Position numbers and translations under genes: made by a program
Part shown: positions 56,497-60,557 of the stretch, piece by piece
How positions within the stretch are numbered: the stretch's first letter is position 1
Layout: every line of letters begins with the position of its first letter
Notes under the pieces: generated by a model
The model's input: only the letters and a program-made list of their open reading frames with translations
The model's database searches: none
What the model was told of the DNA's origin: nothing
NCBI GenBank assembly: GCA_904063045.1
Contig: CAJFCJ010000006.1
Location: forward strand, 3,488,408-3,552,407
Origin: Dimorphilus gyrociliatus
Taxonomy: Eukaryota; Animalia; Annelida
Reading direction: 5' to 3'
Length of the DNA stretch: 64,000 nt

Positions 56497-56514
56497 GTCA
56501 CGTGACATCTATAA
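56497..56514 (+). promoter_or_regulatory. Ferritin A promoter: GTCACGTGAC palindrome plus TATA-like element
   Basis: GTCACGTGAC at 56497-56506 followed by CTATAA; the same arrangement occurs at ferritin B. Confidence 0.5.
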
Positions 56515-56542
56515 TTGTGTTGTTTCTGAGAGCGCCATTCTA

Positions 56543-56574
56543 TTGCTTAGCTGCGTCAGGGAACGTACAAGCAA
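56543..56574 (+). promoter_or_regulatory. Iron-responsive element (ferritin type) in the 5' UTR, loop CAGGGA
   Basis: TTGCTT-A-G-C(bulge)-TGCGT-[CAGGGA]-ACGTA-C-AAGCAA folds by eye into the ferritin IRE architecture. Confidence 0.8.
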
Positions 56575-56661: not shown

Positions 56662-57685
56662 ATGTCTGCAATTCGTCAAAATTTTCACTCTGATTGTGAG
56701 GCTGCCATCAACAAGCTGATAAACTATAAACTACATATTTCTTACGTTTATCAGTCCATGGTATAATATACTTTAGTTTTTCTTTTTAGTTATAATATTC
56801 AAAATCCTAGTTTTAGTAAAATATTAACAAAAATACAACGACAAAAATCCGGTAAAGGAAATGACCTTGAAAACGTGACTTGCTTGACACAGACAACTCC
56901 AGGTTAAAAAAAACAGCTGTAAAATAAACATCTGATTACGTAATATATCGTAATATTTCATAAAAACCAATGAAAAATATTCAAGTGCTTTTAATATTAA
57001 GTAATTTATTATTACTTATATACTAATCACATAAATCAATAAAAACAACTAAGTTGTAATCAATTTTTGTTAACTTTCTGCATTGGATCCTGTAAAATAC
57101 ATTTTATATTGACTGAAATTTAATGTATATTTTGAAATAGGCTTGGCATTTTGATCGTGATGATGTCGCCTTACCTGGATTTCACAAGTTCTTCAAGCAC
57201 ATGTCAAATGAGAAACGCAATACTGCTACAATGCTGATGAAATGTCAAAATCTGCGTGGTGGAAGGATCATTTATCAAGATATTAAGGTAATTTGTAACA
57301 TTAAAAACTATAAATGTATAATATAGTAGTGGTAATTTTATCTCAGAGTCCAGAAAAGGAAAAATGGGGATGCGGTTTGGAATGTATGCAAGTAGCTTTG
57401 AACTTGGAGAAGAAAGTTAACGAGAATCTTTTGGAAATGCATAAACTAGCTTCTTCCCATAAGGATCCTATTTTATGCGACATGCTGGAAGATGACTATC
57501 TTCGTAAGCAAGTTCACAGCATCAGACGCTTGGGAAAATTCACAACCCAACTTAAACGTGTTGGTTCTGGTTTGGGAGAATTCACTTTTGATCATGAAGT
57601 TCTCCAAGATTTTGAACCAGGAGTTGCAAGAAAAGCTAACAATCAACAGATTGTAACCAAACTTAACGAAGATACCCAAAAATGA
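56662..57685 (+). CDS. Cytosolic ferritin paralog A, ferroxidase-deficient, C-terminally extended
   Basis: Exons 56662-56760, 57141-57287 and 57347-57685. [18 protein letters not shown] and LGEFTFD motifs are present; ferroxidase ligands are substituted. Confidence 0.95.
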
Positions 57686-58705: not shown

Positions 58706-59489
58706 AAAAACATTTACATCACAACTAAAGTCGAAAGTCTCTACTAAGCTTTTTGATAAATCAAACGAAAACAAAGTAGAAGTATTGTTTCACTTCTCTA
58801 AATAGGTGTAAGGTTAACCACGAAAATAGATTTAAGAACATATGCGTTTTTTCATTAAATACAATATGGTATTTCTATTAAGTTAACGTTGGATACTTGA
58901 TCGATTTCTAGTAAATATTCTTTATGCCATTCAAGAAAAATATCTACACTTCTACATATAAATGTCTATATATATATATATATATATTCGTTTTGACACG
59001 ATATGAAATTATCTAATCTAAATTGATTATCAGATATATTAAAATTTACAGATTTATTTAACAATGTCGAATCAAAGTTATAGATTCTTTAAGATTCTAT
59101 GAAACAATATAGAATAGGCGTAGGAAAACTGTCCAGACAAATGCACTTAATAAAAATTGAAATTTATCTTTTTCTAGTTCAGATCAATTTTCAAATATTG
59201 ATAGATATTTTGAACAGAATAATCTTTTTAGCACAAATATCTTGGGTTTAATATCAGTTCTCTATTTATCATCTTCAATTTGAGAAGGTTTTAAGTGTAA
59301 ATATCTCGAGTTTAACAAGATTCCATAATATATTTTGATAACTATAATTCTTAAAAATATTCAAACTGCTTCTGCTTATGTAAAACCAAAAAAAATGAAC
59401 GATATGTACTAATTATTTAACCCTAATTGCTCGGAAGATAATGTCGAGTAAACAACACGTGACTCGAGAATGTAGGCCGTGTATAGCAA

Positions 59490-59548
59490 GTGACGTCACC
59501 TTTGGCCAACCATCAAATAGGCAATAGGCGAATCACGTGATATAAATA
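59490..59548 (+). promoter_or_regulatory. Ferritin B promoter: CRE, E-box and TATA
   Basis: TGACGTCA near 59492, ATCACGTGAT near 59532, TATAAATA at 59541. Confidence 0.6.
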
Positions 59549-59575
59549 GAGATCGTCTACGCAGAACCGCCATTC

Positions 59576-59609
59576 TTTGCTTTGCTACGTGAGAGAACGT
59601 ACAAGCAAA
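59576..59609 (+). promoter_or_regulatory. Iron-responsive element (ferritin type) in the 5' UTR, loop GAGAGA
   Basis: TTTGCTT-T-G-C(bulge)-TACGT-[GAGAGA]-ACGTA-C-AAGCAAA. Confidence 0.8.
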
Positions 59610-59672
59610 TTTCAGACTCTTCAGACTCGTTTTTTAAGCGTCAAATTCTTCAACAACCCTCTGAAAAACACC

Positions 59673-60557
59673 ATGTCTTCGATACGTCAAAATTTCAATT
59701 CTGAATGTGAAGCTGCTATCAACAAGCAGATAAACATGGAGCTCTATGCTTCCTACGTTTATCAAGCTATGGTAAGATTTTTTGAAAAACATTTATCCGA
59801 AAAAGAAGGGAATGTATTTTGCATAGTAGCGAGTAGAATGTTAGGCGAAACAAGTGTTATTAATTCAGGTTACAGCAAAGTGACTAGAATGACCTTGTCG
59901 CCATTTTGATATGTTTATGAATCAAATAACAAATAAGTTTAGACGCAGCATGCAAAAACCCTTTCTTAAGCTGTTTTACCCTAAAATCATTTCTGAGTCT
60001 GTAAAAAAATGGCAAAGTATAAGCGTTTTAGTGCGAACGTTCTTTTTTTAGAACATCCGCCATGTTGACTCAAATATGAAGGGTGAAATATTTTGCAAAT
60101 CATCATGACTAAAAAAATTTTAATGAATGTTTTTCTGTAACAGGCTTTCTTTTTTGACCGCGATGATGTGGCTCTTAAAGGATTCCACAACTTCTTTAAG
60201 AAGTCATCGGAAGAGGAAAGAGAACATGCTGAAAAGCTTATGAAGTACCAAAATATGAGAGGTGGTCGCATTATCCTTCAAGATATCAAAAGACCTGACA
60301 AAGAAGAGTGGGGAACTGGCTGTGAAGCCATGCAAACTGCTCTTGTTTTGGAAAAGAAGGTGAATGAAAGTTTGTTGGAAATTCACAGATTATCTGACAA
60401 ACACGGAGACCCACAATTGTGCGACTTCTTGGAAGGTGAATACCTTAAGGAGCAAGTTGACGCTATTAAGCAACTCTCTGACTATGTCACACAATTGAAA
60501 CGTGTTGGACCTGGTTTGGGAGAATTCACTTTCGACAAGGAGGTTCTCCAAGAATAA
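59673..60557 (+). CDS. Cytosolic ferritin paralog B, H-type with an intact ferroxidase centre
   Basis: Exons 59673-59771 and 60144-60557. E27 (MELYASY), E61/E62/H65 (SEEEREHAE), E107 and Q141 are all present. Confidence 0.97.

Follow-up and report, generated by a model that had tools for sequence, protein, structure and literature searches.

The 5'UTRs of both ferritin genes of the annelid Dimorphilus gyrociliatus carry a hairpin that keeps the scaffold of a ferritin IRE and departs from the IRE consensus in its loop, which reads GAGAGA in ferritin B and CAGGGA in ferritin A. We interpret these hairpins, with a probability of roughly 0.55, as natural, selected loop variants of the ferritin IRE that are read by an ordinary IRP, probably more weakly than a canonical element and differently in each paralog. 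They are not a new regulatory system. The wording of the initial annotation, which spoke of an "undescribed regulatory system" and of a "loop rewired", was overstated, given that loops of the CAGGG(N) and GAGAG(G/U) types have already been selected in vitro as ligands of IRP1/2.

The window, by which we mean the whole analysed stretch of 64,000 nt, is AT-rich (30% GC) and contains two tandem, intron-containing ferritin genes (Table 1). A genome-wide search of the assembly (77.9 Mb, 349 contigs) recovered these as the only two ferritin genes; the ferritin and IRP proteins entered the searches one exon at a time. Ferritin A is a 100% match to NCBI DgyrCDS5090 from the same species. Every splice joint of ferritin A and B is present in RNA contigs from four public runs, and the ferritin B joint 59771|60144 was seen in four. 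Ferritin B, an H-type subunit, has its EEREH ferroxidase motif intact; ferritin A has lost ferroxidase ligands (E27K, E62K, H65T). The ferritin A of a related species with ~85% coding identity (L020:8537-9082) is also dead, with an exon 2 that reads ...SCEKRKFAMML (E62K, H65 lost), which makes the inactive subunit an old one that has been maintained.

Table 1. Positions of the ferritin genes, their leader hairpins and the ferritin B core promoter in the 64,000-nt window.
Feature	Position	Strand	Basis or remark
Ferritin A 5'UTR hairpin, variant IRE	56543..56574	+	sequence, fold, covariance model R1 (53.3 bits)
Hairpin A hexaloop CAGGGA	56557-56562	+	
Ferritin A gene	56662..57685	+	exons 56662-56760, 57141-57287, 57347-57685
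Ferritin B core promoter	59533..59576	+	motifs conserved between paralogs and between species
E-box TCACGTGA	59533-59540	+	ferritin B promoter
TATA-like TATAAATA	59541-59548	+	ends 28 nt before hairpin B
Inr-like CCATTCT	59570-59576	+	abuts hairpin B
Ferritin B 5'UTR hairpin, variant IRE	59576..59609	+	sequence, fold, covariance model R1 (55.6 bits)
Hairpin B lower stem, 7 bp	59576-59582/59603-59609	+	
Hairpin B internal loop UGC/C	U59583; G59584 (pairs with C59602); bulged C8 = 59585	+	
Hairpin B upper helix, 5 bp	59586-59590/59597-59601	+	
Hairpin B hexaloop GAGAGA	59591-59596	+	
Ferritin B exon 1	59673..59771	+	ATG at 59673; translation
Ferritin B exon 2, including stop codon	60144..60557	+	PF00210, E 6e-72 to relatives

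The hairpin in the ferritin B leader reads TTTGCTT/TGC/TACGT/GAGAGA/ACGTA/C/AAGCAAA. The stem-loop that had been claimed for this stretch folds as predicted (-11.5 kcal/mol; z = -2.5 to -2.9 against shuffles), and its computed architecture is that of a ferritin-type IRE. The upper helix, UACGU/ACGUA, consists of five Watson-Crick pairs, the length expected of a classic IRE, and C59585, within UGC and opposite C59602, supplies the bulged C8 that is also present in the orthologue. The loop runs G14 A G A G18 A, so that G14 faces G18 and the C14-G18 cross-loop pair is missing; the initial annotation had correctly stated that GAGAGA cannot form this pair and that neither paralog has CAGUGN. The A15-G16-U17 triplet is also incomplete: A15 and G16 are found in both copies, and position 17 is A in hairpin B and G in hairpin A. 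Both paralogs and every relative have A at N19, which is thus present and not G. An alternative fold of GAGAGA, as a GNRA tetraloop closed by U13.G18, was rejected on energy (-4.4 versus -10.7 kcal/mol for the hexaloop). Two RNA contigs from D. gyrociliatus itself, spanning 59588-59770 and 59592-59770, agree at every position, and a contig from a ~96%-identical relative spans 59531-59772, with its first listed difference at 59604 (A>G), where a U.G pair is kept. Because these contigs carry the same loop letters, a sequencing error at GAGAGA is excluded.

Hairpin A, which reads TTGCTT/AGC/TGCGT/CAGGGA/ACGTA/C/AAGCAA, has an AGC/C internal loop and an upper helix, UGCGU/ACGUA, with one G.U pair; its loop retains the C14-G18 cross-loop feature. 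The difference between TGCGT and TACGT in the two upper helices had been taken for a compensatory change, and is really a one-sided exchange of A-U and G.U. A covariation test on seven aligned hairpin sequences found no pairs changed on both sides; the case for structure therefore rests on conservation, wobble changes and homology. Conservation between the paralogs is concentrated in a 41-nt island (CGCCATTCT...AAGC), in which 35 of 41 positions (85%) are identical, compared with 24-34% identity in flanking non-coding DNA, 64-77% in coding sequence and 44-61% at third codon positions. A pattern for the core shared by the two hairpins matches twice in the 64,000-nt window, against 0.14 matches expected.

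A comparison between species extends this picture. Genomic contigs of the related species (L020, 13.7 kb; L021; L022; ~85% coding identity) carry the two ferritin genes as a tandem in the same order, and our covariance model R1 finds both hairpins there. Hairpin B is identical to its orthologue (L020:11029-11072) at 33 of 34 positions with GAGAGA unchanged, and hairpin A to its own (L020:7979-8022) at 31 of 32 with CAGGGA unchanged, or 64/66 for the two together. The remaining 5'UTR shows 48% (B) and 36% (A) identity, ferritin B exon 2 84% nucleotide identity, and 4-fold degenerate sites 25 identities in 50; introns are mostly unalignable. Hairpin B is thus conserved at critical sites in a related species, as a classic IRE should be. 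The sole stem changes preserve pairing on the sense strand as wobbles (A-U/G.U and U-A/U.G, including 59604 A>G). None of the 12 loop letters differs, for which the probability by chance is ~2e-4 at ~50% neutral identity; as judged from these two species, the comparison therefore shows purifying selection on the stems and on both paralog-specific variant loops. The initial annotation's claim that the hairpin is under selection is borne out both by this identity and by the contrast between the island and its flanks.

The position of hairpin B in the transcript can be predicted from the surrounding promoter motifs. A TATA box had been claimed ~30 nt upstream of the hairpin, in agreement with the TATA-like motif that we locate there, and the TATA/Inr spacing places the predicted start ~4 nt ahead of the stem. 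The hairpin stands 64 nt upstream of the ferritin B ATG, and spliced RNA contigs extend into it. Trans-splicing is absent in D. gyrociliatus (PMC7854359), and the ferritin leader should therefore be retained. A cap-proximal position is plausible on these grounds, namely the conserved TATA/Inr motifs and the absence of trans-splicing. The contig of the ~96% relative starts at 59531, upstream of the TATA-like motif, and given this start the distance between cap and hairpin could exceed the assumed value; contig starts above the TATA-like motif could also stem from rare upstream or unspliced molecules. A spliced, cDNA-like outgroup contig (L012:1-54) likewise extends above the TATA-like motif. 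Several other promoter features are conserved between species and partly between paralogs: the palindromic E-box TCACGTGA, which abuts the TATA-like box, the CRE-like GTGACGTCA, and also AACACGTGACT, upstream of ferritin B. These conserved motifs lie at 59453-59548 and 56498-56515 of the window and at L020:10906-11010.

The origin of the variant loops is suggested by ferritin mRNAs from marine samples (L009-L012, L015-L017), the proteins of which are 74-79% identical to ferritin B. Their leaders read TTTGCTT-TG(G/C)-GACGT-CAGTGA-ACGTA-C-GAGCAAA; the stem is nearly letter-identical to the D. gyrociliatus hairpins, and the loop is the canonical CAGUGA. Since the same stem carries a canonical loop in these relatives, both D. 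gyrociliatus hairpins are derived IREs, true descendants of a normal ancestral annelid ferritin IRE. Most of these mRNAs (L009, L010, L015-L017) combine CAGUGA with a G8 bulge, a feature reported in annelid ferritin IREs (PMC8466369; PMC4184891). Compared with the outgroups, hairpins A and B both show C8 and U9, the latter completing the fifth pair; hairpin A additionally shows U17->G and A10->G, and hairpin B C14->G and U17->A. A pattern scan of metagenomes returned two loci only, both with the canonical loop.

Searches with general IRE models bear less on this interpretation than might be expected. Rfam RF00037 and RF02253 have no match in the window, either at the gathering threshold or at E<=10. 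The same two models give no match at E<=10 on the canonical CAGUGA annelid hairpins (L009:8-51, L010, L011/L012, L015-L017), the apparent cause being a G8 (or C8) combined with a G9.A24 mismatch. Because Rfam also misses annelid IREs with canonical loops, the failure of hairpin B against these covariance models says little in annelids. A scan of the whole genome with RF00037 and RF02253 scored 82-87 candidates and found no convincing IRE, so that absence elsewhere is weakly established. The best Rfam candidate (L001, 20.5 bits) was not convincing. Our own model R1 matches the two ferritin hairpins only in the 78-Mb genome, and is biased toward ferritin stems and would miss other IRE genes.

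Compared with the classical ferritin IRE (RF00037 IRE_I), the D. gyrociliatus hairpins share the ferritin host gene, the 5'UTR position, the length of ~30 nt, C8 in UGC/C, the 5-bp upper helix, the 6-nt loop, A15, G16 and a non-G N19. They differ in that hairpin B has G14.G18 in place of C14-G18 and A17 in place of U17, in that hairpin A has G17, and in that neither has an Rfam match even at E<=10. The closest loop variants are known from SELEX. SIREs motif 8 (C8 with CAGGG(N)) and motif 15 (C8 with GAGAG(G/U), a G-G cross-loop) were selected in vitro and bind mammalian IRP1 and/or IRP2 at >20% of wild type (PMC2896125, PMC12230718); motif 17, GAGUG[A/U], is listed beside them. Hairpin A (CAGGGA) is an exact match to motif 8. 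Hairpin B agrees with motif 15 at C8 and at positions 14-18, and differs from the exact hexaloop in that its N19, A, lies outside the listed G/U. N19 has no protein contact (PMC8466369), and an A should therefore be tolerated there; A occupies N19 in 16% of classic IREs (PMC8466369). As ligands, the SELEX motifs are either artificial or weakly supported, whereas the D. gyrociliatus loops are natural, evolutionarily fixed and located in the primordial IRE gene.

The literature is divided on what such loops can do. G-G cross-loops were found adequate for binding (Volz, PMC8466369). The same source argues that in-vivo regulation needs C14-G18 and A15-G16-U17, and notes that human ferritin elements with a single change at such a position still bind in vitro but no longer regulate in vivo (PMC8466369). 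Curated IRE seeds show no variation at C14-G18 and U17, which counts against reading the hairpins as IRP targets. Departures from the consensus that are specific to a lineage are found within the same phylum: G8-type IREs occur in annelids, brachiopods and crustaceans (Periserrula, crayfish; SIREs motif 18). The D. gyrociliatus hairpins, by contrast, have the canonical C8 as their bulge and depart from the consensus in the loop; the G8-type outgroups carry a G9.A24 mismatch, and D. gyrociliatus has U9-A24. The earthworm Eisenia andrei offers another comparison, with an annelid IRP1 orthologue that has Arg at the K379 position and keeps the other contacts; its IRE keeps the CAGUGN loop, however, and its peculiarity is the predicted bulge position (PMC4184891).

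The likely reader of these hairpins appears conventional. The genome contains one gene of the aconitase_1/IRP1 type (G000:C7, L006-L008), beside one mitochondrial aconitase. We aligned the exons of the IRP gene individually with human IRP1 (2B3X) and rabbit IRP1 (3SNP/3SN2) and checked the IRE-contact residues named in PMC4184891 and PMC8466369. The gene keeps L262, R269, N298, E302, S371, C437, T438, N439, S681, P682, R713, R780, D781 and W782; K379R is the only change among the checked residues. The earthworm Eisenia IRP likewise has Arg at this position and binds its own ferritin IRE in EMSA (PMC4184891). Nothing in the known contacts, as predicted from the translated gene, suggests an altered specificity, and the initial annotation's proposal of a co-evolved IRP with altered specificity finds little footing in a contact set that is intact except for a change common to an IRE-binding earthworm IRP. 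The conserved IRP1 residues may also be held, partly or alone, by aconitase function. Two further features of these loci may be recorded. An open frame containing CPFH lies in an intron of the IRP gene (L006:2778-3080, - strand), at the position of the vertebrate IRP2 insert; it has no detectable similarity to solved IRP2. The mitochondrial aconitase (G000:C28:5-1021, L005) is a single intronless open frame of 564 aa at the very start of a short contig.

If the preferred interpretation is correct, both hairpins would sit at the extreme 5' end of the two ferritin mRNAs and would preserve the two-point geometry of IRP1 recognition: C8 in UGC/C, an upper helix of exactly 5 bp, and a hexaloop with A15 and G16. 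The lone conventional IRP1/cytosolic aconitase would bind them at low iron, and its presence on the hairpin would block ribosome recruitment and repress ferritin translation. Its affinity would probably be below that for a canonical IRE and unequal between the paralogs, and iron would then govern how much ferritin is made in total as well as the ratio of active (B) to ferroxidase-dead (A) subunits. As the loop of either paralog is unchanged in a species with ~50% 4-fold identity, paralog-specific tuning by the two hairpins stays a live idea.

Other interpretations have to be weighed against this one. It is conceivable, and in our judgement unlikely, that the hairpins are selected but are no longer IRP targets, and instead serve another RNA-binding protein or a structure-only role, at the cap, in translation or mRNA stability. 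Both loops break features held essential for IRE function in vivo; their conservation across species shows sequence-specific reading without naming the reader; and the genome scan found a canonical IRE nowhere else, so that nothing else forces IRP1 to bind RNA. A new reader, however, would not be expected to preserve every IRP-specific determinant, and C8, UGC/C, the 5-bp spacer, the hexaloop size, A15 and G16 are all kept in the two paralogs of either species. The contact residues of IRP1 are also intact, and both loops fall inside known IRP-binding sequence space. A change on the protein side—a co-evolved IRP, or two splice forms, one carrying an IRP2-like insert exon and one lacking it, that prefer different loops and would give each ferritin paralog its own reader—seems improbable. 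Some SELEX G-G loops are reportedly IRP2-preferring, the loops here are paralog-specific and conserved, and the CPFH open frame occupies the vertebrate insert position; but that candidate insert lacks detectable similarity to solved IRP2, and the sole contact change, K379R, is not specific to the lineage (PMC4184891).

The inverted repeat TACGT-N6-ACGTA could be a DNA-level promoter element beside the initiator, read by a transcription factor, with any RNA role vestigial. ACGT cores are typical bZIP/bHLH half-sites, and the island starts at the Inr-like CGCCATTCT, just downstream of the conserved TATA and E-box motifs. We consider this very unlikely, however, since the hairpins are homologous to canonical ferritin IREs, the lower stem and bulge are conserved too, and the substitutions are G.U wobbles that keep pairing only in sense-strand RNA. 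Also disfavoured, and hardly credible on the present comparisons, is a functionless, decaying relic, or a likeness to ferritin A produced by gene conversion. Some lineages, C. elegans and Schistosoma among them, no longer have a ferritin IRE (PMC4184891), and the D. gyrociliatus genome is compacted. A relic, however, would not be expected to remain 64/66 identical where about half of the neutral sites have changed, and gene conversion would not give loops that differ between paralogs and yet are fixed within orthologue pairs.

Functional IREs are held to have an invariant C14, G18 and U17, and opinions differ on whether the in-vitro binding of IRPs by SELEX-type loops ever carries over to function in vivo. 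The ferritin IRE, the oldest IRE, here carries two SELEX-type loops, each kept by selection in at least two species beside a conventional IRP. There is also a practical blind spot, in that Rfam IRE models miss annelid ferritin IREs, canonical loops included. A more far-reaching scenario, which we regard as a long shot, is a re-specified IRE/IRP circuit in which the loops CAGGGA and GAGAGA were fixed before the dinophilid split and are read with unequal affinity, or by different splice isoforms of the single IRP gene, with or without an IRP2-like insert, with iron setting the active:inactive ratio. If true, it would parallel H/L ferritin tuning in an invertebrate and would prove for the first time, from a natural case, that an IRE can function in vivo without the C14-G18 pair and U17. 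D. gyrociliatus offers a natural, culturable test case for the minimal needs of IRP recognition and for which loop positions are indispensable, and its two hairpins may allow separate control of the active and the inactive ferritin subunit.
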